IMG/VR virus record: IMGVR_UViG_3300035183_000733
Location: 62,001-126,000 of that record
Direction: 5' to 3' (one strand)
DNA length: 64,000 bases
In this document: positions 18,297 to 57,596 of the stretch, piece after piece
Numbering within the stretch: the stretch's first letter is position 1
Layout: each line of letters starts with the position of its first letter
The notes under the pieces: generated by a model
Database searches by the model: none
Seen by the model: the letters and a program-made list of their open reading frames with translations, nothing else
What the model was told of the DNA's origin: nothing
Made by a program: the position numbers and the translations under genes

Positions 18297-18908
18297 TTAT
18301 TTATTTGTGCTTGGGTTGTCTTTCTTTATTATTACGTGTCCTTGCTGCTTTGTTTCGGCAGGTTTATCGCCTTTAAAATCAAGGAAGAACTCGATAGATT
18401 GCGGGGCACTCATCGGCTGCACAGGCACGATGTCGAGCCCTATGGTTTGCGCCTGGACGCGCCTGGACGCGCCTGACCATTGCAGCTTCACCTTGCGTGG
18501 GAATACCTGGCGCCATGCCTTCATGAACCGCAACACGTACTTGTTGGTGTACCACGAGTTGTTAACGTGAAGAACGAACGCGCCCCAGTTTGTCTTCGGC
18601 ACCGGAACGTACTCGGTGTTGGTGCTGAATATGCCCCACGAGCTGTCAAAAATCTTTACGACCATCCTCGTCCAAGTGCTGTCGTCCTGGTTCCACCTGT
18701 AAATCCTCGCGGACTTGCACATTTCGACGAACACGTGTTCCCTGTACTTGTACTCCCAGCGCTTGCCGGTTTTAGTCACGTACACGAAGTTGTCAGAATC
18801 CGCGTCTGCGTCCAGTGTCATAGGATTACTCGTCATCGGGCAATACAGACCTGTCGGCAGTATTACTCTGCGGTGGAACTTTAGGTATTTCTCTGCGATG
18901 TTGCTCAT
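18297..18908 (-). CDS. Hypothetical protein carrying a capsid-protein-like motif
   Basis: C-terminal VQAQTIGLDIVPVQPMSAP..FFLDF matches the MCP segment VAAKTVGFDIVPVIPMPGP..TYLDY. Confidence 0.7.
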   Translation of the reverse strand: MSNIAEKYLKFHRRVILPTGLYCPMTSNPMTLDADADSDNFVYVTKTGKRWEYKYREHVFVEMCKSARIYRWNQDDSTWTRMVVKIFDSSWGIFSTNTEYVPVPKTNWGAFVLHVNNSWYTNKYVLRFMKAWRQVFPRKVKLQWSGASRRVQAQTIGLDIVPVQPMSAPQSIEFFLDFKGDKPAETKQQGHVIIKKDNPSTNK

Positions 18909-20146
18909 GCGAATGGGTCGTAATCATTTAGGTTGTCCTCCGACTTATCGTCATCCGACTTCTTCAAGTCGGTGACGTCCGTCAAACGCTGAAGTCCAAC
19001 CGGTATCTCGGTGTGTCCCATGGCCACCATGATCCTATTTATCGGGTCAAGAATAGTTTTAGAGAACTGCTCGTCGTAATCTATGGCAGGCGCGAACTCG
19101 TACGGATACATACCCGGTATGTAAGCGAACACGTTCTCCTCCGCGTTCTTGTGCTTGGTTTTTGCGTAGTAGAACTTGACCTTGTCGCCAGCCCTGATGA
19201 GCTGGTACTTAGACTTGTACTTGGACTGATTAAGGGTGAAGTTGTAGTAACCAGAAGCGCGGACGTGAATAGGTGTCTGCTTGCCAGTCTCGAATGCAGT
19301 TGTGTCATTCAGGATGTACTTCCCGTAGTCGTTGATGCTCCGGCCCATCGAGATCTTCTCAGGGTCCGCCATCTTGAACTCCTCCTTTATTTTTCGGAGA
19401 ATCGTCACCATCTCGTTCTTGTTCAAAGACTTCTTCTTAGTGAACACATATTTCACCAGCTCCTTGAGCTTCTCGCGAGCGAACGCCGGTGTCGAACTCT
19501 GCGCCAACTCAACTCCCTTAAATATAATGTGAGACAGAGACTCCATGGCTATGCCGGACTCCCACACCTCGTTTATCAGGTATTTCTTCTTAGCGAGCCA
19601 TATACCGGACTCGGAGATGTTTTCAAGCTCAAAGTCCATGTGGTTCTTGGTGTTCCACTTCTCAGCGTACTTATCGAAGCACTTGTTGAGATAGGAGGCG
19701 AGCCTGTGCTCGTTGATTTCGAGTATGAGTTGCTTTGGGTCCCCGGTCCAATTACACGACTCCACAACCTCCTCAAACGACACGTAGCAAGAATCCGTAT
19801 CCGAATAGATGTTCACTGGGCGCTTCACCTGCCTAACCTCGTAGTCTATGCCAAGCTTCGCGTGAAGCTCCGTATCCTTATGCCAAAATTCGTTGAAGTA
19901 CTGGTTGAGCCTCTCCTCAGCGTACTTGATGAGGTTTTGACCCTGCAACGTGATGGTCTCCGCAACCTCAGGGTTGAAGCACACCAGCCACTTGTTACCG
20001 AGCGCCCCGTATATGGAGTTGATGGTTAGCTTGATGGCCTGTTCCTCGTTTTTCCATTCGTTGGAGAGCTGCTTCATGCGCTCTATCTCCGCCTTGATTT
20101 CTTCTACGGTGGCGGTGGAAGGATCTATAGTAGTGTATGTAAACAT
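18905..20146 (-). CDS. Family B DNA polymerase, C-terminal subunit (gp43B-like)
   Basis: KLTINSIYG (motif B), YSDTDS (motif C), KKKY, KGVELAQSSTP; no exonuclease or motif A. Confidence 0.92.
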   Translation of the reverse strand: MFTYTTIDPSTATVEEIKAEIERMKQLSNEWKNEEQAIKLTINSIYGALGNKWLVCFNPEVAETITLQGQNLIKYAEERLNQYFNEFWHKDTELHAKLGIDYEVRQVKRPVNIYSDTDSCYVSFEEVVESCNWTGDPKQLILEINEHRLASYLNKCFDKYAEKWNTKNHMDFELENISESGIWLAKKKYLINEVWESGIAMESLSHIIFKGVELAQSSTPAFAREKLKELVKYVFTKKKSLNKNEMVTILRKIKEEFKMADPEKISMGRSINDYGKYILNDTTAFETGKQTPIHVRASGYYNFTLNQSKYKSKYQLIRAGDKVKFYYAKTKHKNAEENVFAYIPGMYPYEFAPAIDYDEQFSKTILDPINRIMVAMGHTEIPVGLQRLTDVTDLKKSDDDKSEDNLNDYDPFA

Positions 20147-20184
20147 CGAGAATATTTTGTTAATTTTATGGTGTTCAAATTGAT

Positions 20185-20592
20185 TTGTTTCTCGTGGATT
20201 TCCAACCAACAGAAGATGAAAACTATCTTACGCACCGGATGACGTCAGGTCGCGTTGAGATAGGTGTGTACCGCGTAATTTTCGGGTACAGGGTCAGAGC
20301 CGGCTACGTCGGCTCAGGGTTTTACCACATAGACTACTGTTGCGGGGCAGACCAAGATTGGATTAGACGGGTGTATGCTGCCGTGCTTACCGTGCTTACT
20401 GCACGCGAAGAGCAAGATGCCTTCAAGGGGTTCCCGTCACAGACATACAAGCCAATGTCAGAGGATTATGTCTGTTTCGTAAGCCTGTGCCAAATGATGA
20501 AGGGCGTCCCACCGGTGAAAGTCGAAATTAACGTCCCGCCTGTGGATAAGAACAAAATATTCAGCATTGAGTCGATGTTCAATGTTCAATGA
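20185..20592 (+). CDS. Hypothetical protein
   Basis: 135-aa ORF; start uncertain (TTG 20185 or GTG 20194). Confidence 0.55.
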   Translation: MFLVDFQPTEDENYLTHRMTSGRVEIGVYRVIFGYRVRAGYVGSGFYHIDYCCGADQDWIRRVYAAVLTVLTAREEQDAFKGFPSQTYKPMSEDYVCFVSLCQMMKGVPPVKVEINVPPVDKNKIFSIESMFNVQ

Positions 20593-20720
20593 ATAAATCG
20601 GTGAAGATACAGATACTCGAGTATTTGGGGCATTTCATGTTGTGTTGTGGACACAGACTTGTCCGGTGGAGAAGAAGACACTAAATATAGTGAAACAAAA
20701 GTTAGGTGTGTAAACGTATC

Positions 20721-20875
20721 AGACGAGCCTTAAGGTATCCTAAGTGAGGTGTCCGTTGGACTGCGGCTAAGCGTAGCTAAAATATCTTAGATTTCCGGGA
20801 ATCTGAGACTATTTTCTTACGTTCGAAAATGGAAAATGTATAAATTAAGAAGCCGACAAATAAGTCGGCTTTTTC
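20721..20875 (+). ncRNA. Candidate structured small RNA ending in a terminator
   Basis: Non-coding stretch with successive hairpins (10-bp stem with G-U pairs at 20785-20808) and an AAGCCGAC/GTCGGCTT-TTT terminator. Confidence 0.35.
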
Positions 20876-20876
20876 T

Positions 20877-21536
20877 TTAATGATGGTTGTCTATAGCAGT
20901 TGGGACCCGCTTGTCCATTATCTTCTTCAGTTCATCGAAGCTATACGGATAAAGATTGTTAGTATCAACTCCTACGTCCATGGTCCTTGCATTTGGTATC
21001 TCTGCAAGAGATCCGTGACTGTGTCCATAAAGGAACCACGAGCCCCTGTGTGACTGGTCCCACACCCTTGCCGAGTAGTGGAACATGCAGACCATCTGCC
21101 CGTCTATTAGGACCTCCATGTACGAGTCGCACCTCTTGAAATATCTTCTGAGGTTCTCGTCCCTACGGATGTTGTGGTCATGATTACCGTATATCAGGTA
21201 CACGTTCTTGCACACGAGCCTGTCCATAAATATCCCGACGTTCTCGCGTCCGCCGAACGCCACGTCGCCGAGAATGAACAGCACGTCCGTCTGTCTCACC
21301 GTCTCATTATACCTGCTCACGAGTGCCTCGTTCATGTCCTCGAGCGTCGCGAAATCTCTCAGTCCATTCTCTTTACAAAACGCGCTACGCGCATCTCTGT
21401 CAGTCCATTTGTTGTATGGTGTAGGCCAGTCCTCTGGCTTAATCCATGAACTAACCCCAGCCGTGATGTTTTTGTGTCCGTAATGACTATCGGCCGAGAA
21501 ATATACTTGGCATTCGTCAGTTTGTTGTATTTTCAT
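20877..21536 (-). CDS. Calcineurin-like metallophosphoesterase
   Basis: DSHYGH, LGDVA, GNHD, GHSH, DVGVD. Confidence 0.9.
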   Translation of the reverse strand: MKIQQTDECQVYFSADSHYGHKNITAGVSSWIKPEDWPTPYNKWTDRDARSAFCKENGLRDFATLEDMNEALVSRYNETVRQTDVLFILGDVAFGGRENVGIFMDRLVCKNVYLIYGNHDHNIRRDENLRRYFKRCDSYMEVLIDGQMVCMFHYSARVWDQSHRGSWFLYGHSHGSLAEIPNARTMDVGVDTNNLYPYSFDELKKIMDKRVPTAIDNHH

Positions 21537-21585
21537 TATTCAATTTTTTAATATTTACCGGCGCACAAGCCGGTGAAATTCCTAA

Positions 21586-21593
21586 CAAAGATA
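21586..21593 (-). promoter_or_regulatory. Bacteroidota-type -7 promoter box TATCTTTG
   Basis: Exact TAnnTTTG ~50 bp upstream of the 21536 start; similar boxes at 22315-22322 and 55201-55208. Confidence 0.6.
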
Positions 21594-21632
21594 CTATTTG
21601 TTTTTGTGTTAATCCTTGTTCGAAATATAATT

Positions 21633-22262
21633 TTAAATTAGCACTTTTTTACCCGGAGGCAGCTTGAGCGAGAACGATCTCCGGTGGTGCACCGTGTAAC
21701 CGTAGTCCGCTATTGCTTGGAGATGGGCCTCCGTTCCATACCCCTTGTTATTTTCCCACAGATACTGGGGGAACTGTTCGCCGAGCTTCGTCATCAACCT
21801 GTCTCTGTACACCTTCGCAATAACCGAGGCTGCCGCTATGTGGAGATACTTGTCGTCGCCTTTGACCACAGTGACGTGAGGTATGTTTCCATACGGCTTG
21901 AACTGATTGCCATCCGACACGATGAGGCTCACGCTATCGTGCCACATAGATAGGCTGTCTATGGCAAGGTGCATCGCCTTTATAGAAGCGTTCAGGATGT
22001 TCATCTCGTCTATCTTGGACGGCGAAACGACCCCGATGCCATACCCAATCACCATGTCATTATCCTCGGCGGTCAAGAACTCGTACGCCTTGTCCCGCGC
22101 CTTCTCGGTCATCTTCTTGGAATCGCGGATGCCATCGTACTTGAAGTTATCGCCGAGTATGACGGCAGCGGCCACTACCGGACCTGCGCAGCATCCTCGC
22201 CCAACCTCATCGGTGCCTATCTCGGTGCCGGAATCGTATTTAAGTTTAAGTTCCATTTCCAT
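21633..22262 (-). CDS. rnhB: Ribonuclease HII
   Basis: GTDEVGRG, GPVVAAAV, DSKK, DGN, KGD, IAAASVIAKV.RD, NKGYGT, HRRSF. Confidence 0.93.
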   Translation of the reverse strand: MEMELKLKYDSGTEIGTDEVGRGCCAGPVVAAAVILGDNFKYDGIRDSKKMTEKARDKAYEFLTAEDNDMVIGYGIGVVSPSKIDEMNILNASIKAMHLAIDSLSMWHDSVSLIVSDGNQFKPYGNIPHVTVVKGDDKYLHIAAASVIAKVYRDRLMTKLGEQFPQYLWENNKGYGTEAHLQAIADYGYTVHHRRSFSLKLPPGKKVLI

Positions 22263-22329
22263 TAAATGAAAAAAGGCCCTAAGTATTTTACCCAAGCCTC
22301 TTGAATTATCAATACAAATATACACATTT

Positions 22330-23043
22330 TTAGAACGGCAGTTCCGGTTCTGCCTCAATAACGCGGAAATAAGAATTGTTATCCCAGTACACATCCTCTC
22401 CGGAATCGAGGTCAAAACTGTCCCTGGAAACACGCACATACACCTTTCCAAATCTGTGCACATCCGAATCTGACGTATCAGCAAACTGTTCAAGATCCAT
22501 CTTTAGAATCCTATCGAGCTTCTGCTCGAACTCGCGCATCAAGGTTGCCTTTAGGTCCGCAACCCTCAGGTCGCTTCTTTCCCACTTGCCCACCATCACT
22601 CCTGCAGGCTCTATGATAGAGTCCCTGTCGAATCTCGCATCGGCAATGCGATCCAGCTCAATCTTAGTCAGTATCGTCCTCGTCAGTTTGAAGTTCACCT
22701 CGGACGTCGTAGGCGGCAGCAAATAAACACCATGGTTCATGTTCTGCATGTTCTCCTTGAACACCCCAGGTGTGAATGCGATGGAGTATATGCGTACCTT
22801 ACTTCTCGGCTTGAACATGTTGTTAAGCTGAACGGTCACGCACAGGTTACCGTCATCGACCGAACCGTAGACCGAATCGTAGAATGGACTGTCGAGCACT
22901 TCGATCTCGCATCCCGAGAAAAGAGGCATTCTCTCGAGCGCGTCAACAACCCCCCTCAGCTGGTCGCCCTGGTACGTGAATGTGTCGGCGATTGCCGGAC
23001 GCATATCCTCATACAGCTTCTGTATTTCGTTATCCTTGAGCAT
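22330..23043 (-). CDS. Hypothetical protein
   Basis: 237-aa ORF coupled to the clamp gene. Confidence 0.7.
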   Translation of the reverse strand: MLKDNEIQKLYEDMRPAIADTFTYQGDQLRGVVDALERMPLFSGCEIEVLDSPFYDSVYGSVDDGNLCVTVQLNNMFKPRSKVRIYSIAFTPGVFKENMQNMNHGVYLLPPTTSEVNFKLTRTILTKIELDRIADARFDRDSIIEPAGVMVGKWERSDLRVADLKATLMREFEQKLDRILKMDLEQFADTSDSDVHRFGKVYVRVSRDSFDLDSGEDVYWDNNSYFRVIEAEPELPF

Positions 23044-23810: not shown

Positions 23811-23880
23811 GCCTTTCTTATTTGTCTTATTGTTTATACGGTAAACTGATTGTTTGTTTCATCGCGTGCGGCGGAAATTA

Positions 23881-25278
23881 TTAGTCCTCGTCCTCCTCGA
23901 TTTCGTCCCCAGTCTCATCCTCGTCTTCACCGTTATACACCTCCACGCCGTCAATGCTCATAGGCTGGTCGTCGAAGAGCGGCACGGACTTCATGTTGAT
24001 CTTACCCTTTGACACAAATGTCTTCTCGAGAGCCTTGCACTTCTTGAGCTGTTCCTCTATGGTTTTCTTCTGGTCGCGTATTTGCTTCTCGAGCTCCTTG
24101 ATTTCCTCCTCCGTCTTCTTAACCGTCTCCGGTGACAGGGCGGTGAGCTTTATGTTATCGAGGCGTGCCGCTATTTTCTTGTTGTATTTTGATATGAATA
24201 CTTTGATCTCCTCGTTCTTGCGCTTCTTCTCCATCATGAACAACAAGAATTCCCTCTTGGCCCTCAAGTAGTCGAGCTCCTCATTGTACACGTGAAGGTC
24301 GTACACCATCCGGTTGTGTATGACGCGCTCCCTGTGCACCTTGAACTCGTCAAGGTAATCACTTATGCTCTCGTACTCTATGACGGAACCGTCCTTAACG
24401 AATATCAGACCCTCAACCACGACAAGCTTCGTCAGTTTCTCTATATCCTCGCACACCGCGGCAAACGTGGATTTATCCCTCCACCTGATGGTGATGTCGA
24501 CTTCCTTCTTGGAGTTGTTCTCTATCTTGATATAGTTGTCGCCGTGCTTCGCAAGCTTCTCGTGCATCCTTACTATGAACGAATCGTACTTCATGAGCGG
24601 CGGGAGATCACCAATGTGCATGGTCATCTTGGCGTCGTCTTTCTCGAACTGCCCCTCTATGAGCCAGGCCTTGTCGAGACCGTTGTGCTTCTTGATGTTG
24701 CCCTTGAACCCAACGAAGTATGGTTTAAGCTGCTTGTTCTCGCCGTTCAAGTATTTTATTACGTCATCCATCTTACGAGGCAGGATGTTGGACCTGTACC
24801 CAACCGCGATACCGACGATGTGCGTGTACAACCCTATTGGCACATCGAGATTCAAGAACTCGAAATTACCTTCCATGTTCCTTACGTTTAACGGCGCGTA
24901 CTTGTCCAGTATCTCTTTGATATGCGGGTCGCTCTTAACCTTTGTGTACCTGGTGGATGCCGGTCTCGGCCGCACCGGGCTTCCGAAGAATCCGTCACCT
25001 ATTATCATGGAGCGCGAGCATCCGAATGGTCGAGCCAGTTTGTTTATAGCCTTCGACAAGCTCATATCGCCGTGGTGATACAGGCCCGTGGCCATTACCG
25101 ACCCAACGAGCGCGACTGTGGTCTGAAACCTCTCGGGCACGTGCAGCAGTATCAATCGCTGAACCGGAGTTATCGAATCGTAGAAGTTCGGGATGCCGCG
25201 ACTCTGAATAACGTACATCGAGTACGTGCGGTAGTCCGTATTTATCTGCTCCTTAATTCCTATTGTAGTTATATCCAT
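23881..25278 (-). CDS. DNA topoisomerase II, breakage-reunion subunit (gp52/GyrA-like)
   Basis: SRGIPNFYDS.TPVQR, YHHGD, GFFGS, ASTRYT catalytic Tyr, GIAVGY. Confidence 0.93.
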   Translation of the reverse strand: MDITTIGIKEQINTDYRTYSMYVIQSRGIPNFYDSITPVQRLILLHVPERFQTTVALVGSVMATGLYHHGDMSLSKAINKLARPFGCSRSMIIGDGFFGSPVRPRPASTRYTKVKSDPHIKEILDKYAPLNVRNMEGNFEFLNLDVPIGLYTHIVGIAVGYRSNILPRKMDDVIKYLNGENKQLKPYFVGFKGNIKKHNGLDKAWLIEGQFEKDDAKMTMHIGDLPPLMKYDSFIVRMHEKLAKHGDNYIKIENNSKKEVDITIRWRDKSTFAAVCEDIEKLTKLVVVEGLIFVKDGSVIEYESISDYLDEFKVHRERVIHNRMVYDLHVYNEELDYLRAKREFLLFMMEKKRKNEEIKVFISKYNKKIAARLDNIKLTALSPETVKKTEEEIKELEKQIRDQKKTIEEQLKKCKALEKTFVSKGKINMKSVPLFDDQPMSIDGVEVYNGEDEDETGDEIEEDED

Positions 25279-25348
25279 TTCTCTCTCTTATTACTTGTAC
25301 AATTTGTTCGAAGAAGTACCTTCTTGACCTCCATCGATGTATTCCATG

Positions 25349-27157
25349 TTATTCAAATTCGTTTGACAACCATTTCTTTCTCGGTGCCGAGTCCATACCG
25401 AATGCCATGTCCAGGAACTTCTTAGCATCCTCTCCACGCTGGATCTGTAACAATTGCTTGTTCGCCATTATGTGCTCCCAATCCTCCTCAGCAAGAGACC
25501 CGAGACCCTTGAGGAACCTAAGACCCTTGTACGATTTCTTCTTGCGCTGAAACTCCTCGAACTCTTTCTTGTCGAAGAAGTACTGCCTGCTTTTGCCCTC
25601 GTCTATAGACATGAGTGGAATCTTAAGCCTGTACAACTTGCCCTCGTCGATTATGTATGGGAACCACCTGTAGAACAAATTGACGAGCAGCGAGCAGATG
25701 TGCCCTCCGTCCTCGTCGGAATCGGACGCTATTATTATTCGCTTGTATGTGAAGTGGTTGCGCTTATTAGGGTCGAGGTCGAGGTCGAGTATCTGCATCA
25801 GTGCTACGATCTCCTCGTTGCCAGACAGGTCCGATACGGAGCGCACGTTGTTTATCTTACCCTTTAGCGAGTACACACCGTCAGTCTTCGTATCACGCTT
25901 CTGCAGGATAGAACCCATAGCGGACTCGCCCTCGACTATGAACAGGTTCTCTATCCTCCCAGAGGGCGGGAAGTACTTGGAAGACTTCTTCATGTTTGTC
26001 TTCTTCTTAACGTTCCTGAGCTTGTTGACCTCGGTGGACATCTTACGGTCCTCAACCCTCTTCAGGATTTTCTGGAACAAGTCGGTTGTGTAGAACTGCT
26101 GGAGCCCCCTTCTGAAGTTTTCTAATATGGTTCCCTCAACGTCGTCTCTCGTGGACGCGAGCCTGGTCTTGTTCTGGTCCTGGAACCTCACCAATTTCGG
26201 CGGGAGGTTGAGCACGAAGAACGTCTCGTAGAAGTGGTGACCAAGCGTGTCGTCGAGCTCCTTGTTGATGTTCTCGTTTATGATCCTCTGATGTATACCA
26301 GTACACATAGCAGAGTTCACGAACGACAAGGACCCAGACGAGTCATAGCTCTCGTACAGTATCAAGTGTCCGAGCTTTGATTTGTAGACAAATGCCGATG
26401 ACGGGTAGAACGGCACGTCGAGCGCAAGCTTCTCGCCATCAAAGAACACCTCGAACTTAAGTGACGCAAGGAACTCGTCCTGCTTGAGGAGAAAATTCTT
26501 GAATATCATCTGTGTCCTTATTATGTCCTTGTTCCATCTCGCCTTCTTGAATATATCCTTGCGCGGTATGAAACCAACCTTCGTGCCGGTAGTCACCTGT
26601 ATGCCCTTCGACACGGTTGTATTGTTGGACTTGAAGTTATTCCACTCCTTGTGAAAGTATGATTCTTTGTTACGCGTCTCAATGTAGAACTTGCTCGACA
26701 GCATGTTAACGAGCGCAGCACCAACTCCATTAGTACCTATAAGCGCGTCATTTATGTTGTCGTTGTTGAAGTTGGAACCGGCCCTCAGCTGGCTTATCGC
26801 GGTCTCGATGTTGGTCAGGCCCGACTTCTTGTTTATCGCGGTCCCGTTATGGAATCCTTCTCCGCCGTCGATAATCTCCACGAGGTTGTTCGTCGAATCG
26901 ATGGTAACCTTTATGGACTTCATCTTTCCCTTCAGTCGCTTTGCCTCGTCCACCGCGTTGTCGAGTATCTCGTGAAACAGCTTGTAAAAACCAACTGATA
27001 TGTCGTGTTGCTCCATGACTATCCTGCCATCGCGGACGATTGGTATCTTCTCCTCGGTTAGCTCCACTGCACCGACATACATAGTCGGTCTCTGTAATAC
27101 GTGCTCGTGCTCGTCGAGTACTACTATTTCCTTATTATTAGACTGTTTGCTTGACAT
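25349..27157 (-). CDS. DNA topoisomerase II, ATPase/TOPRIM subunit (gp39+60/GyrB-like)
   Basis: EHVLQRPTMYVG, EILDNAVDE, GTNGVGA, VEGESA, LKGK, DSDEDGGHI, KGLG. Confidence 0.95.
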   Translation of the reverse strand: MSSKQSNNKEIVVLDEHEHVLQRPTMYVGAVELTEEKIPIVRDGRIVMEQHDISVGFYKLFHEILDNAVDEAKRLKGKMKSIKVTIDSTNNLVEIIDGGEGFHNGTAINKKSGLTNIETAISQLRAGSNFNNDNINDALIGTNGVGAALVNMLSSKFYIETRNKESYFHKEWNNFKSNNTTVSKGIQVTTGTKVGFIPRKDIFKKARWNKDIIRTQMIFKNFLLKQDEFLASLKFEVFFDGEKLALDVPFYPSSAFVYKSKLGHLILYESYDSSGSLSFVNSAMCTGIHQRIINENINKELDDTLGHHFYETFFVLNLPPKLVRFQDQNKTRLASTRDDVEGTILENFRRGLQQFYTTDLFQKILKRVEDRKMSTEVNKLRNVKKKTNMKKSSKYFPPSGRIENLFIVEGESAMGSILQKRDTKTDGVYSLKGKINNVRSVSDLSGNEEIVALMQILDLDLDPNKRNHFTYKRIIIASDSDEDGGHICSLLVNLFYRWFPYIIDEGKLYRLKIPLMSIDEGKSRQYFFDKKEFEEFQRKKKSYKGLRFLKGLGSLAEEDWEHIMANKQLLQIQRGEDAKKFLDMAFGMDSAPRKKWLSNEFE

Positions 27158-47685: not shown

Positions 47686-49200
47686 TTAGATGATACCTGA
47701 GGTAGGCACCTGGATCGTGAAAGTGAAGTACATTGTCTGTGGGTGGAATCCAGCTGACACGAGGGCGTAGCGAGACTTCACAGCGATCTTCGGAGACATA
47801 GTGCCTTCAGAGATTGTCTGGATAGACTCAGCCATCATGTACGGCATGAACTTCAGACCTGGCTCGTCGTCTGCGCCCTTACGGCCGACAAGTACGCGAG
47901 TGTCAGTCCACTTCATGTTCTGGTCAACGTACACAGTCATACCAGCGAGTGATCCTACTGGGTAGAGAGCACCGTTGTTCTGGCTTGCGGTGTTCGCGAA
48001 CGGAGCTGGCTGGAACTGGCTGATGTCCTGGATCGCCGTAGCAATCTGAGAGTTACATACAACGAAGTTCGCAGGTCCACGACGACCACGGTTTGCTACT
48101 ACGTTAGCGGCAGCAAGTATGCGGCTGAAGATTCTCCTCTGGAACGTCTGGAGGTTCTCGTACGTACCAACCGTAGGCAGAGCCGTAAGGTTGAGGTCGA
48201 GCACCTGTCCTTCAGTTGCAGCGAACTCAGTAGCGTTCTGCGTACCAAGACCGAATGCGGTCACGAGGATGTGTTTGTTGATGTGCTGTGATACATCGTT
48301 AACGAGCGAGTTCTCAACCATCGACACAACGTCGATACCGAACTGCTTGTTAAGGTCTTGTATCTGCTCAGTAGTTACCTGCGCAGCAAGCTGGTAGGTC
48401 TCAGTCTCAACGAACTTGGTGAAAGTCTTGAGGTTAGTCGTCCTGTAGTAGGTAGACTCACCAACTTCACGGGTCATTGGACCAGAGTCGTTAGCATCTG
48501 CGTAAGGACCGGTCCAGTTAGCTGTGTCAGTGTCACCTGCACCAGCGAAACCTTGGATGTGATCTTCGAGCATTGCTACGAGGGCAGCAGCGTTAGTAGC
48601 TGCAACCGGAGCTGCGTCAGTTGTTACTGTCGCGCCAACCACACCAATAACCTGAGCTACAGAGATGGTAGACGGAGTAGATGCACCAACCTTGAAGATT
48701 GGGTAACCGTCGATCCTCGACTTACCAACGAAGGTAAGGGCAAGGGTACCAGCACCTGAAGTTGCGGTGTACGATGTACCGTTAGTCCACGTACCTGTCG
48801 CGTTGAACTTGATCAGGAGTGGCTTATGGTCAGCGTTGTCGATACGTCCACCTGCGTAAACGTAATCGAGGTAGGTGAGAACACCTGTTGGGCCTGGCAT
48901 CGGGATAACCGGAACGATGTCGAAACCTACAGTCTTAGCTGCTACCTGGATAGCGAGCGGAAGAAGTGAAGGGAACTTGTCGCCGGAACCGTTAGCGGAC
49001 CTGGTCGGAGCCAAAGGCTGGCCCATACCGTTAAGCGCGTCGAGAGTGCCGTATCCAGCGTGGATAGCAGACTCATTGAGCGAGTGGTAGTGGCAGTACT
49101 TAGAAAGCCATTCTACTTTGTTCGAGTCTTTGATATTAGTCTTCTCGTTGATAACCGGAGACCAAGTTTCAAAAACCTCTTGTTCGTTGATCATTTTCAT
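47686..49200 (-). CDS. Major capsid protein (T4 gp23-like)
   Basis: WSPVI, DIVPVIPMPGPTG, TTEQIQDL, RRGPANFVV, VG.LAG..VYVD, FMPY, MSPKIAVKSRYAL. Confidence 0.95.
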   Translation of the reverse strand: MKMINEQEVFETWSPVINEKTNIKDSNKVEWLSKYCHYHSLNESAIHAGYGTLDALNGMGQPLAPTRSANGSGDKFPSLLPLAIQVAAKTVGFDIVPVIPMPGPTGVLTYLDYVYAGGRIDNADHKPLLIKFNATGTWTNGTSYTATSGAGTLALTFVGKSRIDGYPIFKVGASTPSTISVAQVIGVVGATVTTDAAPVAATNAAALVAMLEDHIQGFAGAGDTDTANWTGPYADANDSGPMTREVGESTYYRTTNLKTFTKFVETETYQLAAQVTTEQIQDLNKQFGIDVVSMVENSLVNDVSQHINKHILVTAFGLGTQNATEFAATEGQVLDLNLTALPTVGTYENLQTFQRRIFSRILAAANVVANRGRRGPANFVVCNSQIATAIQDISQFQPAPFANTASQNNGALYPVGSLAGMTVYVDQNMKWTDTRVLVGRKGADDEPGLKFMPYMMAESIQTISEGTMSPKIAVKSRYALVSAGFHPQTMYFTFTIQVPTSGII

Positions 49201-49218: not shown

Positions 49219-51207
49219 TTACTTTTTAAAACGTTGTCCGAGTTGTGACGCGATTTTGTCCATGTACTCTGTGCCGTAGCCGAGTGTCTTGGTTTTATCG
49301 GTGTTCGCTGGAACTGCCGTTTCATTTTCGTTGAGTTTTACAAGTCCAACAACCTTGCCCCTTACAAATGGCCTGCTTGTCCAGAAGTTCTTGATTTTGT
49401 ACTCGGTGTCGAGGTTCATCAATTTGCTCTGTGCAAGTATGCCTTGCTTTTCGGATTCGGTAAGCGCCTCGTAGAGCGGCTTAATCGACTCCGGAATCAT
49501 TTGCAGGAACTTCGGAGTGTCATCCTGCTTCTCAATCAAAGCTGCTTCCCAAATTTTGGTTACGTCAGCTTCTGAAAAGTACGCACCTGGTTTCAGGGCG
49601 TTTGCGACCTTTTCTTTCTTGGCCTCCTCGAGGGCTTCGAACTCGTTCCTCTTAGCTTCGCTTAGGAAGCGGAAGAAGTGGTACTGGCTCTCGTTCATTT
49701 TGGTGGCGGCTTTCTGTTTAGTAGCGGCCTCCAGCAGTTGGTTTATCTGTGCGGACAAACCAGTGTATTTGTTCGCCTCAGCTACGCTCTCGTTAACCTT
49801 GGCTATCGGTGCAGAACTATTGTTCGTAGCTGCTGGCATTGCGGTAACCGCTGGGGCCGCAGCAACGACGTTTTCAGCTATATATTCGGAATAAGCGATG
49901 TTATTCTCGATTTTTTCTGCCAAATACTCAGAATATCCGATTCCCCTGTCGAGGTTCTCTGCGAGGTACTCGGAATAAGAAATGTTCTTGTCGAGGTTCT
50001 CTGCGAGGTACTCGGAATAAGAAATGTTCTTGTCGAGGTTCTCTGCGAGGTACTCGGAATAAGAAATGTTCTTGTCGAGGTTCTCTGCGAGGTACTCGCT
50101 GTAGTTGATGTTCTTCTCGAGGTTCTCTGCGAGGTAGTCCATAAACGAAATACCGCGGTCGAGGTTCTCTGCGAGGTACTCGCTGTAAGAAATGTTACGG
50201 TCGAGGTTCTCTGCGAGGTACTCGCTGTAAGAAATGTTACGGTCGAGGTTCTCTGCGAGGTACTTAGAATACTCGATGTTCTTGTCGAGGTTCTCAGCCA
50301 CGTACTCAGTGTACTGAATGTTCTTATCAAGGTTGCCTGCGAGATACTTCATGTACCTCTCGTGCTTCTCGATTTTTTCAAGAAGGGTCTTGATAATTTC
50401 AGCATCAGTAGACTCGGTAACCTTCGACTTAACATTTTCAATCTCCTTCATGATTCCGGTACGGAATGCAGCGGACCAATCGTTGAGCTCTTCAGATGTT
50501 ACGAATTGATTCATGTCGTTGTTGGTTTTTTTGTCCTCATCCAGCATCGCCTTCTTAAACGCCGCATTGTTCGGATCTACACTATATATCTTCGTGTGTG
50601 CGGAAAATTCTGGCGCAAAGCTCTCCGAGATGTCCGTAAGCTCTGAAATAACGGACTTTTTAGTGCCCGCATCAAAGTTCGCGCTCTCGTAAATCCTATC
50701 AAGCTGTGCCTTTTCGAAACCAGGGTCTGCGACGAGGTCGTATGTGAATATCTTTTTGATCTTAACCTTCTTGTTCTCCATAACAGAACCGGCAGCACGC
50801 GAAGAAATAGACAGCGGGTATCCGGCGTCTACTAATGTCTTGGCAATCTGTCCGTGTGGAGTGTCGAGCAAGCGCACGCGAATCCTGAGGGTCCTGTCCT
50901 TCTCGTTGTACTCGAGCTTCTCAACTATGTGGGATATGTTCTTGAGGGAAACGTCAAACTTCTCTGGGTGGTCGAGCTCTCCGACCAGGCGCTTCTGCTG
51001 AATCTTCTTGTTTAGGTACTCGAGGTGCGGAAGATACTCCTTTGCCTCGTAAATCCTGTGGTTGTTATTCTCCTCGCCCATGATAGCGGCGATACCTTCG
51101 AGAATGTAGTCTTTCGGATTGCTACCCGTAGCCTCTACCACGAGGTTGCTCTCAGCACGCTCGAGGAGGAACACGTAGTTCTCTTGTAGTTGCAGGTTTG
51201 TATTCAT
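49219..51207 (-). CDS. Prohead protease (gp21-like) fused to a repeat scaffold (gp22-like)
   Basis: N.N.RIY, GELDHP, LDTP.G, ISSRAAG, YDLVADPGF, followed by 14-aa repeats. Confidence 0.92.
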   Translation of the reverse strand: MNTNLQLQENYVFLLERAESNLVVEATGSNPKDYILEGIAAIMGEENNNHRIYEAKEYLPHLEYLNKKIQQKRLVGELDHPEKFDVSLKNISHIVEKLEYNEKDRTLRIRVRLLDTPHGQIAKTLVDAGYPLSISSRAAGSVMENKKVKIKKIFTYDLVADPGFEKAQLDRIYESANFDAGTKKSVISELTDISESFAPEFSAHTKIYSVDPNNAAFKKAMLDEDKKTNNDMNQFVTSEELNDWSAAFRTGIMKEIENVKSKVTESTDAEIIKTLLEKIEKHERYMKYLAGNLDKNIQYTEYVAENLDKNIEYSKYLAENLDRNISYSEYLAENLDRNISYSEYLAENLDRGISFMDYLAENLEKNINYSEYLAENLDKNISYSEYLAENLDKNISYSEYLAENLDKNISYSEYLAENLDRGIGYSEYLAEKIENNIAYSEYIAENVVAAAPAVTAMPAATNNSSAPIAKVNESVAEANKYTGLSAQINQLLEAATKQKAATKMNESQYHFFRFLSEAKRNEFEALEEAKKEKVANALKPGAYFSEADVTKIWEAALIEKQDDTPKFLQMIPESIKPLYEALTESEKQGILAQSKLMNLDTEYKIKNFWTSRPFVRGKVVGLVKLNENETAVPANTDKTKTLGYGTEYMDKIASQLGQRFKK
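49870..50355. repeat. 42-bp tandem repeat encoding YSEYLAENLDKNIS (11 full + 1 partial)
   Basis: Directly visible in DNA and protein. Confidence 0.95.
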
Positions 51208-51233
51208 CCGTTGTAAGGTTGATTCCTTTGTCT

Positions 51234-51400: not shown

Positions 51401-51414
51401 TGTGGTGGATCAAT

Positions 51415-51598: not shown

Positions 51599-51862
51599 TC
51601 ATTGCTTGGGCTTGAAATGTTTACAGCTGAACTCTGGATCGAAAGATACCGGGCCGAACGGTGACTCACCGGGCCAGTCCCACCTGTAGAAGCCATTCGC
51701 TGTTCTGCCGTACGGAACGCACGCGCTGCGCACATCCTTGTTGTCGCACAGTCCAAGCATTATGTCTTCCAGTCTGTTACCCTGCACCCTGACCTTGTTG
51801 TAGTGCGCGCAGTTACCACAGCAGGGCTTAACTTGCTTCTTGCGTTTAAACGGCCAAATCAT
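51599..51862 (-). CDS. Small Cys-rich hypothetical protein
   Basis: CCGNCAHY...GLC...SCKHF. Confidence 0.65.
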   Translation of the reverse strand: MIWPFKRKKQVKPCCGNCAHYNKVRVQGNRLEDIMLGLCDNKDVRSACVPYGRTANGFYRWDWPGESPFGPVSFDPEFSCKHFKPKQ

Positions 51863-52671
51863 TTCAGGGTCTCCTTTCCGTACTTCCCGTACTCCGAGTT
51901 CACGCTCTCCTTGATTATGTTCATAGAGTCCTTTATCTGCTTGAAGTACGTGTCTATCGGCAGGTCGTTCGGATCGTCCGCGAATGGGTCCTCTATCTCG
52001 TTGCTTATTATCTCGATGCCGGCGACTATGTAGAATATGACCATGACCATCGCTGCGGCCCAGAGTCCGAGGTCGTGAAACAACCCGAATGGCAGGCTCA
52101 GCAGGTATATGAATATCGATGCCTTTATGTGCAGGGCGTACGCCTTCGGTATCGGCGTGCTCTTGATACGCTCGAACGAGTTGGATATGTCAACTATCTC
52201 ATTTAGTTTGTCCTCGAGAATGTTGAGGTCCCTGTCAGACAACTTGGCGTCGCGTATGAGTAACAACATATCGCAAACGAACTTGGTCTGCTTATTATGA
52301 TGTCCCATGACGTTATCGGCGTTCGTCTCTCGCAGGTAGTCGGACAGGTTGCGCAGTATCTGCTTTATGATGTTACGGGCCTGCGTCTTCACGAGGACGT
52401 CGGTGCAGCACGAGTTCAATTTTATTGAGAAGTAAGATATTGAGGTCGACAGCGCGCTGAAGAGCCTGCGTCCCTCCCACCAGCGGTCGTACGCGGTGTT
52501 CGTCCTGAAAACGAGCAGCAAGCCGATGACTATACCTATTAGCGAGTGCATGCTCGCCGGGATCTGAACATGGTAGTACTTACTGTTGACGTATAGCAGG
52601 TTGAGTAAAAACGTATAAACACCTATGACGCGTTGAACTTGCCGGCGAATTCTGTATTGTTGGTCGGGCAT
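51859..52671 (-). CDS. Bestrophin-family (YneE/VccN-like) ion channel
   Basis: LLVFRTNTAYDRWWEGR, ERIKSTPIP.AY, EIEDPF..D.NDLP; 4 hydrophobic segments; N-terminus possibly disrupted. Confidence 0.9.
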   Translation of the reverse strand: MPDQQYRIRRQVQRVIGVYTFLLNLLYVNSKYYHVQIPASMHSLIGIVIGLLLVFRTNTAYDRWWEGRRLFSALSTSISYFSIKLNSCCTDVLVKTQARNIIKQILRNLSDYLRETNADNVMGHHNKQTKFVCDMLLLIRDAKLSDRDLNILEDKLNEIVDISNSFERIKSTPIPKAYALHIKASIFIYLLSLPFGLFHDLGLWAAAMVMVIFYIVAGIEIISNEIEDPFADDPNDLPIDTYFKQIKDSMNIIKESVNSEYGKYGKETLK

Positions 52672-52914
52672 GCCGTGTTCCTCGTACTCGAATCAGAAGC
52701 CACTCGCCAATCTCCTTTCCCTCTCCATGCTTGTCGATGCTGTCCATTGACTTATTGGCCGATGCAAGAAGTCCAGACTATCGGGTGATTTTGCTGATGC
52801 CCACATACATGATGTCTGCGTCAGATTCGTTCTGTCCGTGATAGTTCTCTTCGTTGTATTCTCCGTAGTCGAGCAGTTTTAGGTAGTCTCGACCGAAGCC
52901 GTAAAATATCTTGT

Positions 52915-53406: not shown

Positions 53407-53407
53407 G

Positions 53408-53896
53408 TTAATCTTTTTTTGGTCCTTTCATGTTGCGCGTCTCGTAGTATATGTTGTCGAGGCTGCGGTCTATCTTCGATCTGACCTCGGCCTCGAGCGC
53501 TGCCCTGCGGCGCTCTATCACCTTGTGCAGGAAAGACGTTATCTTGCCGTTGAGATCGTCTGTGACCGATATGTCATAGTGGTACCTCCCGTTAATTATA
53601 CTAACCGTGCCACGCTCCACTATCACGAATATGTCGCCATAGCGGATGTAAAACTTCTGCGAGATTGGCGCTATCATCAGTTCGGAATCCGACTTGGCCG
53701 CGAGGTTGCGGATGATGCCGAAGCACTTCGCCTGGTCCGAGTTCATCCGGCGGTTCCACATGCCGGACATCCTCACATACTTACGCATGCGCCAGTAGTA
53801 GAACTTGCGTATAATGGCATGCCCCCATCGCGCCAAGAGCGAACCTTCTCCAACTTCCTTATCGGACTCTTCCCCGGTAGTTCCTTCGTTGATCAT
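53408..53896 (-). CDS. Hypothetical protein
   Basis: 162-aa ORF. Confidence 0.65.
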   Translation of the reverse strand: MINEGTTGEESDKEVGEGSLLARWGHAIIRKFYYWRMRKYVRMSGMWNRRMNSDQAKCFGIIRNLAAKSDSELMIAPISQKFYIRYGDIFVIVERGTVSIINGRYHYDISVTDDLNGKITSFLHKVIERRRAALEAEVRSKIDRSLDNIYYETRNMKGPKKD

Positions 53897-54123
53897 TTAA
53901 TCTCTGTTGCGCCGGACCTACTTGTCCAGCTTGTCAAAATAATAATAATTTGCAAGATGATGACGGCACAGCAAAACATGCCGACACCAAATGCAATCCA
54001 TTCCAATGAAGCCATTTTATTTTTCTTCTTGGACGACCTGCCGCTCTTAGGCGTCTCCTCCTTTTTCTCCTCTGTGGTCTTACCCGCGTTGGGGTCTTTC
54101 CATAATTTGTCAAGAAATCCCAT
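53893..54123 (-). CDS. Small membrane protein
   Basis: One TM segment; follows lemA. Confidence 0.55.
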   Translation of the reverse strand: MGFLDKLWKDPNAGKTTEEKKEETPKSGRSSKKKNKMASLEWIAFGVGMFCCAVIILQIIIILTSWTSRSGATEIK

Positions 54124-54127
54124 ATTT

Positions 54128-54729
54128 TTATTTGTCAAAGTTTACGGTTGGTGTTTTTTCTGCTCCCTTGTCTGCCTGGAAGTACGCCTTGGTCTGAAAT
54201 CCGAACATGCCGGCCCACACATTTTTTGGGAACCTTCTGATGTACTTGTTGTAGTCCTGCACAGCGATGTTGAACTCGCGGCGCTCTACGGTTATGCGGT
54301 TCTCCGTGCCCTCGAGCTGCGACATCAGCTGGTTGAACGCCTCATTGGATTTGAGGTTCGGATACTGCTCCATCGTCACCAACAAGCGAGATAGAGTTGT
54401 GCCAAGTTGACCTTGTGCCGCCTCGAATGCCTTCATGGATTCCGGTGTCAGGTTTGTAGGATCAATCTTAACTTGCGTGGCGCTTGCACGCGCTTGAATC
54501 ACCGCTTCGAGCGTTGATTTTTCAAAGTTGGCTTCTGTCTTGACAGTGTTAACCAAGTTCGGAATGAGGTCCGACCTCCGCTGGTATACGTTCTCAACCT
54601 GTGACCACTTAGCCGTTACGGTTTCTTCCATTGATACCATGTTGTTGTAGCTTACATAGCTACTGCAACCTGTGAAGAACAGGACGAACCCGATTACCCC
54701 CAGAAAATGTACTTACGATAGTTTTCCAT
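54128..54729 (-). CDS. lemA: LemA family protein, frameshifted in a G5 tract
   Basis: YQRRSDLIPNLV, E.YP.LK, LEGTENRI.VERR; one more G at 54697-54701 joins the TM N-terminus MENYRKYIFWGVIGFVLFF. Confidence 0.9.
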
Positions 54730-54788
54730 GTTTATCTATTATTTGTTTTGATGAAGTGAAGGTAATAAAAATAGTAAATTGGAAAAAC

Positions 54789-55196
54789 TTACAACCTGCA
54801 CCTGGCCCATTCCATGTATTTGCTGAGGAATTTATCGGCCGGGTTCTTCAGGTCGAGTCGCTTTCGGATGAATATGTCGTATGAGTCCTGTGCGTATTGA
54901 CCGAGTCCGTACAAGTCCTTCGGTTCGCGCCATTCCTTCTCTATGTAGTCCGCGCTCATCTTTATTATCCCTGTGCTGCGTTTGTTTGAGAATCCCAGCG
55001 GCTTTATCAGCTCTGCCATTTCCAATGGATCGGCAGACATGGCCTTCCTGGCGTTCGGCCACCTACGGAAGAATTCGTGCCGAACCCGGTCCACTTGCTG
55101 CCTGGTAGTTTGGTTAAGCATCATACAGCAAACGAAAATCTTCCAGTCGTCCGATCGGTAAATCTCCTGTAATAGATTGTAGGGGGATGTTTTCAC
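54789..55196 (-). CDS. MBD4-like HhH-GPD DNA glycosylase
   Basis: SPYNLLQE, WK.....MLNQT, KPLG, LYGLGQYAQDSY.IF, P.D..L..Y..W; GTG start after TATATTTG. Confidence 0.85.
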   Translation of the reverse strand: MKTSPYNLLQEIYRSDDWKIFVCCMMLNQTTRQQVDRVRHEFFRRWPNARKAMSADPLEMAELIKPLGFSNKRSTGIIKMSADYIEKEWREPKDLYGLGQYAQDSYDIFIRKRLDLKNPADKFLSKYMEWARCRL

Positions 55197-55261
55197 CCGA
55201 CAAATATAATTTTTTCTGCACAAAAATAATAAGCAATATTCTTTTTCCGGTCGAATATATA

Positions 55262-55480
55262 ATGGAAAGGAGAGAAATGGATTCAAACCAAGGCATAGGA
55301 GAAGGTTGCCATGGAGGGAGCGAGAACCTGGCTAAGCTCAGGGAGCTCATTGAGATACTCGACCCTCAGGTGGATGGTACCGAATACCAAAAAGCGGCGG
55401 CCAAAATCAGCGAGATAGTGGAGTCCGGTAAAGGGGGACATCATGACATCATGAAAGCTAAGAACGCTGCGCCGCTATGA
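55262..55480 (+). CDS. Hypothetical protein
   Basis: ATG immediately after AATATATA. Confidence 0.5.
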   Translation: MERREMDSNQGIGEGCHGGSENLAKLRELIEILDPQVDGTEYQKAAAKISEIVESGKGGHHDIMKAKNAAPL

Positions 55481-55539
55481 GTCGTTGTTTGCATCCATCT
55501 CAGCCATACTAACCGGAATAAAAAAAAATTACTCTAAAA

Positions 55540-55875
55540 ATGGAAGAAGAAAGGGGCTGGTCCGAATATGGTAGGTTGGTGTTGAAAGAGCTCGAGAGAC
55601 TTAACAACAACTACGAGTCTCTGCGCAAGGACTTCGACGATAAATTCAAAGAGATTAACGATAGGCTGGCATCCGTCCAGAATACCGAAAAGGTAATGCT
55701 CGAACTGAAGGCGTGGCAGGAGAAGGTCAACGACGTGTGGTCACCGTCCCAGATGAAGGAGTCCAAAGACGAGGTCTACAAGCAGAAGAACCGATGGACA
55801 GCAACCATCGCCATCATCGCGTTCATACAGGTCCTCATAGGCATAATACTCGCTCTAAAGGACAAGATATTCTAA
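55540..55875 (+). CDS. Coiled-coil protein with C-terminal TM (XhlA/holin-like architecture)
   Basis: Heptad N-region, single C-terminal hydrophobic helix. Confidence 0.6.
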   Translation: MEEERGWSEYGRLVLKELERLNNNYESLRKDFDDKFKEINDRLASVQNTEKVMLELKAWQEKVNDVWSPSQMKESKDEVYKQKNRWTATIAIIAFIQVLIGIILALKDKIF

Positions 55876-55878
55876 CAA

Positions 55879-55906
55879 TAAAAACCCCCGATTGAATCGG
55901 GGGTTT
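55879..55906. terminator. Bidirectional terminator
   Basis: AAACCCCGATT-G-AATCGGGGTTT. Confidence 0.75.
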
Positions 55907-55908
55907 CT

Positions 55909-56148
55909 TTAGGCTTGAGCCACAACTTTCTTGCCGGACTTCTCCTTGATGATGTCCTCATACTTGGCCTCGGCTATGCTCTTGATGTCGTAACCGCGGC
56001 TGTCTTCCTTCAGGTACTCCATCATGTTCATCAGCGCCTCGTACAGGCTTTCACCGTTGACAAGGAACCTGGCTTTCTTCACCTTCGGGTTTCCTGTCTC
56101 TTTGTCAATCTTGTCGGTCTCGAAACCGACTACGCATACGTAATTCAT
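55909..56148 (-). CDS. DUF4494-like protein
   Basis: G..KVKK..FLV...S..EA...IKSI.E..YEDII pattern. Confidence 0.6.
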   Translation of the reverse strand: MNYVCVVGFETDKIDKETGNPKVKKARFLVNGESLYEALMNMMEYLKEDSRGYDIKSIAEAKYEDIIKEKSGKKVVAQA

Positions 56149-56168
56149 GGTTGCTTGTTTTTTATTGT

Positions 56169-57596
56169 TTACTTAATATACTCTTCGAGCTTGGCTATCT
56201 CCTTGTTGATGTCGAGCATCTTCTTCTTGGTGGCCTTGCGCTTTGAATAAAGATCCTGCAGTATTGTACGCAAGACGGAGTCCTGTGTTGCGTCGAATAT
56301 GTTATTATTCGCCGTAATGATTTCCCCTTCCTTAGGTTTACCGTCGAGGCTCTTGCCCTTGTACGCCTCCGGAGAGATGTTGAACTGCATCATCGTATTC
56401 GGGTACAGGGACGCAAAGTCATAGCACGCAACCCAGTTGTGGAAACCGATAACCGGCTCCTTAACGTAAGCGCCCTCAAAGTGCTTCTGTTCCTGGTTGC
56501 GTTCCTCTTCCACGAATATCTTGCCCCTCTTGTAGAACTCGCGGCCCATGAGAGCCTCCTGCACAGACACCGGGGAGAACACCCTGTTTACCTCTACGCG
56601 GTCAACCTCTGCGAGCTTGAATAACGTCGTGAGAGTGTTTAGCTTCTTGTCTATGTAGTACACGAGCACGGAGTCAACCGCGTTGTAGAATATGAACTTG
56701 TTGTAGTCCTGCTCATACAAGTCCTTGAACGAACCGTTGTACTTTATCTTACCTATACCCGTCGCCTGCTCGCCGATGTGGTCGAGCTTGTAATTCTCTT
56801 TAATCTTGATGACGCGGTCCCACTTCTTGACAATCTCCAGGTAGTCGACTATGAGCCGGTGTTGCGGCAGCTTGTCCTTTCCAATCAAGGTATTGCTCAC
56901 CGAAGATATTGCTGGATCTATTTTCAATCGCTCGCACCTGTTGACGAGGTACGGCCAGTCAAACCCGCGTATGTTCCAACCAGTGATGCAGGGCATCTTG
57001 TGTATGAACTTAGCGAAGAACGTGTACAACATGTCGTACTCGCTGTCGAACTTGAAGTACCTGAACACCCACTTGTCGTTGAACTTCTTGAAGTGCTCGT
57101 TGACATCGCGCCCTATGGCATCTTGTTCTGCAGCAGTCAGTTCCTTCAGAGCGAGAACGGTTACGGCTTTGTCGGTGCAATTCACTATGGATATTGCAGT
57201 GACCTTATTAAGGGCGAACTCGGGATCGGGAAATCCGTCGGTCACCTCGGTCTCAATATCTATAATGTATTTCTTCGGCACGTTGAACTCAAACACCTCC
57301 TCGAGCTCCTTGGCTCTGTCGTAGAATATCTCCTCTATCCTGTACCTATTCAACCTCAGAGATCGCTCCTTGCGGACGGCACGCAGATTCCATGACATGA
57401 TGCCCGGCTCCGGCTTATCCGTACCGCGAGCATATCCCCAGGTAAACGCGTCCTTCTGCTGCAATGGCAGCTCTTTGTACGCTATCTCTCCGTTCTTGTC
57501 GAAATACGATATGCGCAAGTCCTTTATGCGCTCGCGCATGCCCCGAGTGTTCTCAGTCTCTATCTGTTCGGTTCTTACTTGTACGTCTACTATCAT
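56169..57596 (-). CDS. Family B DNA polymerase, N-terminal subunit (3'-5' exonuclease + motif A)
   Basis: DIETE, TGWNIRGFDWPYL, YN..D, FEGAYVKEP, YDFASLYP; ends in the fingers helix KRKATKK. Confidence 0.93.
   Translation of the reverse strand: MIVDVQVRTEQIETENTRGMRERIKDLRISYFDKNGEIAYKELPLQQKDAFTWGYARGTDKPEPGIMSWNLRAVRKERSLRLNRYRIEEIFYDRAKELEEVFEFNVPKKYIIDIETEVTDGFPDPEFALNKVTAISIVNCTDKAVTVLALKELTAAEQDAIGRDVNEHFKKFNDKWVFRYFKFDSEYDMLYTFFAKFIHKMPCITGWNIRGFDWPYLVNRCERLKIDPAISSVSNTLIGKDKLPQHRLIVDYLEIVKKWDRVIKIKENYKLDHIGEQATGIGKIKYNGSFKDLYEQDYNKFIFYNAVDSVLVYYIDKKLNTLTTLFKLAEVDRVEVNRVFSPVSVQEALMGREFYKRGKIFVEEERNQEQKHFEGAYVKEPVIGFHNWVACYDFASLYPNTMMQFNISPEAYKGKSLDGKPKEGEIITANNNIFDATQDSVLRTILQDLYSKRKATKKKMLDINKEIAKLEEYIK

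Follow-up and report, generated by a model that had tools for sequence, protein, structure and literature searches.

We analyzed a 64,000-nt window (bases 62001-126000) of the IMG/VR virus record IMGVR_UViG_3300035183_000733, which comprises 373,759 bp and is rated 100% complete by CheckV. Within this window we identified two leftward genes that each encode part of a family-B DNA polymerase (PolB), hereafter the N-half and the C-half (Table 1). The distance between the stop of the N-half and the start of the C-half is 36,022 nt, with approximately 45 open reading frames (ORFs) in between. A first-pass annotation, made from the letters alone, had described a family-B polymerase split into two genes about 36 kb apart, without intein or intron. 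Both ORFs were recovered, the terminal sequences it quoted for the two halves proved correct on re-reading, and the profile matches and scans below bear out this description. The start of the C-half was taken as the ATG; a TTG at position 20209, 63 nt upstream, would add 21 amino acids (aa), and an alignment of the ends shows that the C-halves of relatives begin at the position equivalent to the ATG.

The two products cover complementary parts of the polymerase profiles. In Pfam, the N-half matches DNA_pol_B_exo1 (1.1e-16) and positions 21-144 of DNA_pol_B, and the C-half matches positions 134-450 of the 453 positions of the latter (1.2e-18). Matches to PHROGs have E-values of 4e-87 (N-half) and 2.7e-74 (C-half). 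On the full-length profile phrog_262 (856 positions) the N-half covers 109-497 and the C-half 490-839; the halves thus abut, with nothing missing or duplicated. Each product is also matched end to end by a half-length family (phrog_2062, 502 positions; phrog_1918, 382 positions). That the halves have families of their own indicates that the split is already frequent enough among sequenced phages to give rise to them; the halves are also annotated and clustered in public resources.

Neither half contains a Pfam match to an intein (Intein_splicing/Hint), in a scan that does detect such fragments at motif C in relatives (see below), and no intron or other RNA family was found in the window by Rfam at the gathering score. 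The combined length of the halves is 888 aa, compared to 898 aa for the T4 and 903 aa for the RB69 enzyme, which leaves no room for an intein. Composition is alike in both genes (GC content 0.495 and 0.493; GC content at third codon positions, GC3, 0.708 and 0.713), and no shared repeats of at least 10 nt were found at the two break points.

The exonuclease and polymerase motifs of a family-B enzyme are present and divided over the two chains. In the N-half, the exonuclease motifs are D113/E115 (Exo I, DxE), N208/D213 (Exo II, Nx2-3FD), and Y304/D308 (Exo III, Yx3D), and motif A (DxxSLYP) occupies residues 393-399, beginning with D393. Its first fingers helix carries R453 and K457, both invariant, with the same i,i+4 spacing as R482/K486 of RB69. 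The exonuclease residues and the other catalytic residues of the N-half are invariant in an alignment of 15 N-half homologues. The C-half contains motif B (KxxxNSxYG, residues 39-47, with K39, N43, and Y46), motif C (YxDTDS, residues Y114-S119) and the KKKY motif (residues 186-189). As these motifs are distributed over both chains, the deoxynucleoside triphosphate site and the two-metal site are composite.

The nearest solved structures are those of RB69 and T4 gp43 (E-values of 3e-32 for the N-half, to RB69 gp43, and 6e-17 for the C-half). Residues 115-462 of the N-half align to residues 112-488 of T4 gp43, and residues 22-297 of the C-half to residues 543-804. In T4 numbering, the N-half stops at about residue 501 and the C-half starts at about residue 522, placing the break at the fingertip between the two antiparallel finger helices. 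All features of T4 gp43/RB69-type family-B enzymes that we looked for, i.e., Exo I-III, motifs A, B, and C, and coverage of the full-length profile, were found. The enzyme is a T4-like family-B polymerase with an intein-less split at the fingertip.

A search of the whole 373,759-bp genome (PF00136, PF03104, phrog_262) yielded these two genes as the only family-B matches and no other partner for either half; another partner elsewhere in the genome is what the first-pass annotation had named as speaking against its proposal. No Pfam profile of PolA or PolIII-alpha matches in the genome, although a very divergent minimal PolIII might escape Pfam.

We then compared the split across related phages. 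Nucleotide megablast of the N-half gave no match among the phage records searched, from which near kin may be missing. The nearest phage records by tblastn are the huge uncultured phages LR756500-504 and LR745206 together with the Lak megaphages; next come Sphingomonas phage PAU, Chryseobacterium phage MA9V-1, and Tenacibaculum phages. When 5.8 billion proteins were searched by words, 2,249 matched at E<=1e-10. Among the best 120 of these, all but three have a length of 456-498 aa, and the exceptions are two apparently truncated entries on contigs of 1.3-1.9 kb and one protein of 762 aa (P0009, see below). In IMG/VR we compared 20 related records, with N-half identities of 45-61%. In 19 of them we found exactly one N-half ORF and one C-half, with both genes on the same strand, the N-half upstream, and a distance of approximately 13-32 kb; the N-half ORFs have approximately 466-496 aa, apart from one of 536 aa, and most of the C-halves lie in a frame of 382-424 aa. 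Two of these 19 records have direct terminal repeats and are rated complete; in the 20th record the N-half lies at the end of the contig.

Synteny in relatives had been suggested as a check on the split, and the comparison reproduced not only the split and the dispersed layout but also the presence of topoisomerase II (topo II) genes between the halves in four relatives (G001, G003, G009, and G013). The neighbors downstream of the N-half, DUF4494 and HhH-GPD, are the same in relative G002. The distance between the halves varies widely. In the cultured phages PAU, MA9V-1, and PTm1 they are approximately 2-2.4 kb apart, and in huge phages the distance is 281 kb (LR756504, on opposite strands), 221 kb (Lak-A2), 132 kb (LR756502), or 101 kb (LR745206). 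A contiguous single gene is found in Flavobacterium phage MaF61 and in T4-like cyanophages. In every split genome for which the ends were aligned, the break is at the homologous fingertip position. Dispersal of the halves is a conserved trait of a whole clade rather than a peculiarity of this genome, present in 19 of the 20 relatives and with separate halves in PAU, PTm1, MA9V-1, and Lak phages as well.

One close relative carries the polymerase as a single ORF. This sequence (P0009, L005:1320-3608) is on a Logan contig of run SRR21621042 and is 62% identical to the N-half and 59% to the C-half, with a junction colinear with both free termini of the halves. In the trees it nests among split sequences, as sister to the group of the window itself (support 100/99 and 99/99), so that two changes of state are implied. 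Approximately unbiased tests do not reject a tree with a single change (p 0.075 and 0.28), since the placement of the long outgroup branch is weak and this branch can attach to that of P0009 itself. A secondary re-fusion is thus favored by the trees but not proven; the evidence consists of one 3.6-kb contig, and no second contiguous near relative was found in the database.

In three relatives, G001 (L096:934-3850), LR756500 (L095:784-4184), and PTm1 (L093:3660-4487), the C-half is broken a second time, at DTD|S of motif C. All three have a Pfam match to an intein N-fragment after DTD, and a weak match to an intein C-fragment (below the Pfam cut-off) stands at the start of the next ORF in G001 and LR756500. 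In G001 this fragment ends in HN, directly before the Ser at which the polymerase resumes, and an ORF of 400 aa lies between the two pieces; in PTm1 the second piece of the C-half was not located. An intron was considered as the cause of these interruptions and rejected, as no Rfam intron family was found in the loci of three relatives and a split intein was found by Pfam instead. The polymerase of these phages is therefore encoded in three pieces, with one non-covalent joint and one joint apparently ligated by an intein. The C-half in the window is not interrupted at motif C, and in none of the relatives examined is the fingertip break associated with an intein. In several of LR756501-504, LR745206, and Lak-A2, tblastn matches to the C-half fall in two pieces spanning 1.35-2.1 kb, which suggests that interruptions of motif C, possibly inteins, are widespread in the clade.

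To evaluate whether the two halves might associate, we considered a prediction of their complex. The interaction prediction score from aligned errors (ipSAE) was 0.82 in each of three runs, compared to 0.00 for the best of three controls; of 78 solved complexes 51 attain this mark, as do 2 of 108 mismatched pairs. At least 96% of the contacts (approximately 360) agree between runs, and the predicted local distance difference test (pLDDT) of the partner is 84. The confident predicted interface comprises residues 373-474 of the N-half and residues 2-77, 112-125, and 164-191 of the C-half. The contacts of lowest predicted error are between the motif A strand (N-half 382-392) and the motif C hairpin and neighboring palm strands (C-half 121-124 and 174-183), and the finger helices make predicted contacts once every three or four residues, as far as the two free termini. 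The model therefore predicts a heterodimer held mainly by a shared palm sheet, to which the antiparallel finger helices contribute. The first-pass annotation had proposed a heterodimer held by an extended coiled coil of the fingers; the heterodimer agrees with the prediction, the interface is for the most part palm rather than a coiled coil by itself, and the fingers do not exceed those of T4 and RB69 in length. Since single-chain homologues have been solved, the score indicates that the chains can rebuild the known fold, that is likeness, and not binding.

The gene order around the halves (Table 1) places them in different transcription units. The N-half is part of a leftward run of dUTPase-like gene, 150-aa ORF, N-half, and DUF4494. 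The C-half is the first gene of its own leftward unit, divergent from an ORF on the plus strand and downstream of the terminator-like hairpin at 20871-20850, and several plus-strand genes separate the two units. The first-pass annotation had proposed that the halves are independently regulated; the gene order shows separate units, from which independent regulation would be a further step. Both units are embedded among replication and repair genes, and the 36-kb interval contains genes for a capsid protein, a prohead protease, and topo II. The 203-aa and 150-aa ORFs that overlap the halves have no match in PHROGs or Pfam. A search for a promoter word shared upstream of both units gave only chance 8-9-mers, with part of the searched region being the dUTPase gene. 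In sigma-70 and terminator scans, promoter-like sites were no commoner than in shuffled sequence and just two terminator-like hairpins were convincing.

Table 1. Polymerase halves and neighboring features in the window (positions of the window; the minus strand is leftward).
Feature	Position	Strand	Remarks
RecA/UvsX-like recombinase	17000..18277	-	Downstream of C-half
ORF, 203 aa	18297..18908	-	Start overlaps C-half stop
PolB C-half	18905..20146	-	413 aa from ATG; second fingers helix with motif B, motif C, KKKY, thumb, acidic/aromatic C-terminal tail
ORF, 135 aa	20185..20592	+	Divergent from C-half, 38 nt before its start; coding-like GC pattern
Terminator-like hairpin	20850..20871	-	After metallophosphoesterase gene, upstream of C-half unit
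Topoisomerase II A-like (23881-25278) and B-like (25349-27157)	23881..27157	-	Between halves
DUF4494 small ORF	55909..56148	-	Directly downstream of N-half; same neighbor in relative G002
PolB N-half	56169..57596	-	475 aa; N-terminal domain, 3'-5' exonuclease, motif A, first fingers helix
ORF, 150 aa	57593..58045	-	Directly upstream of N-half; stop overlaps N-half start (ATGA); coding-like GC3 0.63; no family match
dUTPase-like gene	58048..58488	-	Head of N-half gene run; GC3 0.34; assigned by motifs read by eye
Free-standing homing endonuclease gene (NUMOD3; phrog_314)	58501..59238	+	GC3 0.34; upstream of N-half run, away from split site

The order C-half, small ORF, UvsX-like gene is that of gp43, small ORF, and uvsX in the T4-like cyanophages S-H9-1, Syn19, and ACG-2014e, so the C-half seems to occupy the ancestral position of gene 43. 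Together, the homologous break, the conserved layouts, and this gene order fit a history in which an old insertion at the fingertip was followed by growth and rearrangement of the gap. The split would date from an ancestor shared by a large clade of big phages, with later growth or rearrangement bringing the gap to its present range of approximately 2 kb to more than 100 kb.

We consider it probable (approximately 85%) that these genes encode a replicative T4 gp43-like polymerase that is made as two polypeptides from two units and assembles non-covalently into a heterodimer. The polypeptides, produced from separate transcription units 36 kb apart, would join after translation in a 1:1 ratio and rebuild the normal single-chain fold. 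From the N-half would come the exonuclease site together with the aspartate of motif A and the Arg and Lys of the first fingers helix that bind the triphosphate. The C-half would add the Lys, Asn, and Tyr of motif B, the aspartates of motif C, the thumb, and a C-terminal tail that, by analogy to the T4 enzyme, should bind the clamp. As the active site for polymerization is composite, neither half should polymerize by itself. The break lies at the solvent-exposed fingertip, a site known to tolerate splitting. Two points weigh against this interpretation: the ipSAE score may partly reflect the model's memory of single-chain folds of the RB69 type, and equal amounts of the two subunits would have to come from distant genes.

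Other readings can be considered. One, which we regard as rather doubtful, holds that the fingertip split is ancient, clade-defining, and reversible in huge phages, and that dispersal gates polymerase assembly through the timing or dose of one half. The N-half might then act by itself as an exonuclease, and the open fingertip might alter nucleotide selectivity as the engineered Pfu split does. A partial uncoupling of function, for example with the N-half as a free 3'-5' exonuclease or the halves made at different times to gate replication, appears unlikely. It would suit the separate transcription units and the fact that the exonuclease domain is wholly inside the N-half, but the halves co-occur strictly one to one in relatives, the predicted interface of approximately 360 contacts is extensive, and both units lie among replication and repair genes. 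We judge it very improbable that a single chain is made by joining the halves through trans-splicing of protein or RNA or through excision of DNA. A naturally split intein is indeed used in relatives, at another site of the same gene (motif C); here neither terminus shows an intein or Hint signal, the 888 aa include no spare residues, no Rfam intron and no shared repeats of at least 10 nt at the break points were found, and the interval of 36 kb contains essential genes (capsid protein, prohead protease, topo II). It is equally hard to credit that the genes are decaying remnants of a broken polymerase, with replication performed by the host or an unrecognized enzyme. Huge phages can have unusual polymerases, such as the split minimal PolIII-alpha in related jumbo phages (Iyer et al., PMC7824862), but the two frames are unbroken and retain all of the catalytic motifs, conservation is strong across more than 2,000 database homologues of N-half length, and the Pfam search for PolA and PolIII-alpha was negative, within its limit for very divergent minimal PolIII. 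Finally, a mis-joined contig with halves that are really adjacent or form one gene is conceivable for a metagenome-derived IMG/VR contig, but has a negligible chance given the proper stop and start of each half at a position conserved in relatives, the same dispersed layout in 19 independent assemblies (with topo II between the halves in four), the downstream neighbors DUF4494 and HhH-GPD shared with G002, and the same break in cultured phages.

A non-covalent heterodimer split at the fingertip has precedents. The first-pass annotation had noted that such splits occur in some T4-like phages with the genes close together, in agreement with the literature, where fingertip-split gp43A/gp43B genes at a distance of 2 bp to 3 kb are described for the Aeromonas phages 44RR, 25, 31, and 65 and for Acinetobacter phage 133 (Petrov, Ratnayaka and Karam, 2010, as reviewed in PMC3061061 and PMC2988022). 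These bicistronic genes yield a two-subunit gp43A-gp43B enzyme (PMC3061061; PMC2988022). As in gp43A/gp43B, the polymerase described here is a family-B enzyme with its break in the variable tip between the finger helices, with a stop and start for each cistron and without intein. It differs in that the cistrons of those T4-like phages lie in one locus, whereas the halves are here 36 kb apart in different transcription units, and in that it belongs to a different clade, of very large phages. As the gene is contiguous in most T4-like phages, the two splits are unlikely to share a common origin.

An engineered fingertip split of Pfu polymerase is fully active, and its separately made fragments reconstitute a stable 1:1 complex (PMC3061061; PMC2988022). 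Here too the cut is near the fingertip, at a site that tolerates a break; the Pfu enzyme is archaeal, in contrast to that of this phage, and was split artificially in a bicistronic clone (PMC3061061). The PolB of Methanothermobacter thermautotrophicus is a non-covalent enzyme from two genes that are likewise distant (85 kb apart) and without intein; it is archaeal and split in the palm, approximately 83 residues C-terminal to the fingertip (as cited in PMC3061061). The chimallivirus PhiKZ encodes DNAP-N (gp82) and DNAP-C (gp50) in two separate, non-neighboring genes (PMC13648687). That enzyme is split in a large palm insertion into subunits of 638 and 731 aa and has an extra Rhc clamp-like subunit, whereas the break is here at the fingertip and the subunits are of 475 and 413 aa; a palm-insertion split with subunits of approximately 640 and 730 aa, which defines the chimallivirus type, is not what we find for this polymerase.

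Fractured PolB genes with split inteins, such as those for Nanoarchaeum equitans PolB and the PolB16 OarG intein (PMC10189870; PMC2677866), also encode a family-B polymerase in pieces, but the halves in the window lack IntN and IntC fragments at their broken ends. The Ser1/Ser+1 split intein of the relatives, at DTD|S of motif C, occupies the same extein site as the PolB16 OarG intein (PMC2677866; PMC10189870). Judged by its sequence, the enzyme belongs to a known class, the family-B polymerases with a natural split and no intein, and within it to the fingertip-split type. A literature search, with sparse coverage of subscription journals, retrieved no paper on dispersed PolB halves in Lak-, PAU-, or PTm1-type phages, and Iyer et al. 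(2021) do not mention them (PMC7824862).

These results identify the family-B fingertip as a robust natural cut site: an entire lineage of very large phages, with PAU, PTm1, Lak, and many uncultured members, has kept the cut while the distance between the halves drifted from 2 kb to over 100 kb. For the annotation of these genomes, it matters that the two ORFs labeled DNA polymerase, of approximately 470 and 390-420 aa, are parts of one enzyme. The halves need to be paired in PolB phylogenies and marker-gene pipelines, and completeness tools should not treat them as fragments. Within this clade, two kinds of natural split can be compared in the same gene, a non-covalent one at the fingertip and one mediated by an intein at motif C.

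Several other features of the region are of note. The dUTPase-like gene (minus strand) and the NUMOD3 homing endonuclease gene (plus strand) at 58048-59238 both have a GC3 of 0.34, compared to 0.57-0.74 in the other nearby ORFs measured, and a local dip in GC content to 0.435 coincides with these two genes. Being of foreign composition, the pair appears to be a mobile cassette that was acquired recently and lies directly upstream of the N-half run. A dUTPase gene also adjoins the N-half in phage PAU. A protein of 804 aa (59253-61667, minus strand) has matches to the Major Vault Protein shoulder (2.1e-27), a Vault_3 repeat, and SPFH/Band 7, which is unusual in a phage. Between the structural genes and the N-half, at 51859-52671 (minus strand), lies a homologue of the bestrophin family of anion channels (Pfam, 9.4e-50). 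The prohead protease (Peptidase_S77; 49219-51207, minus strand) is unusually long at 662 aa and contains PGEED-type repeats, and the gene next after it, at 47686-49200, encodes a gp23-like major capsid protein.

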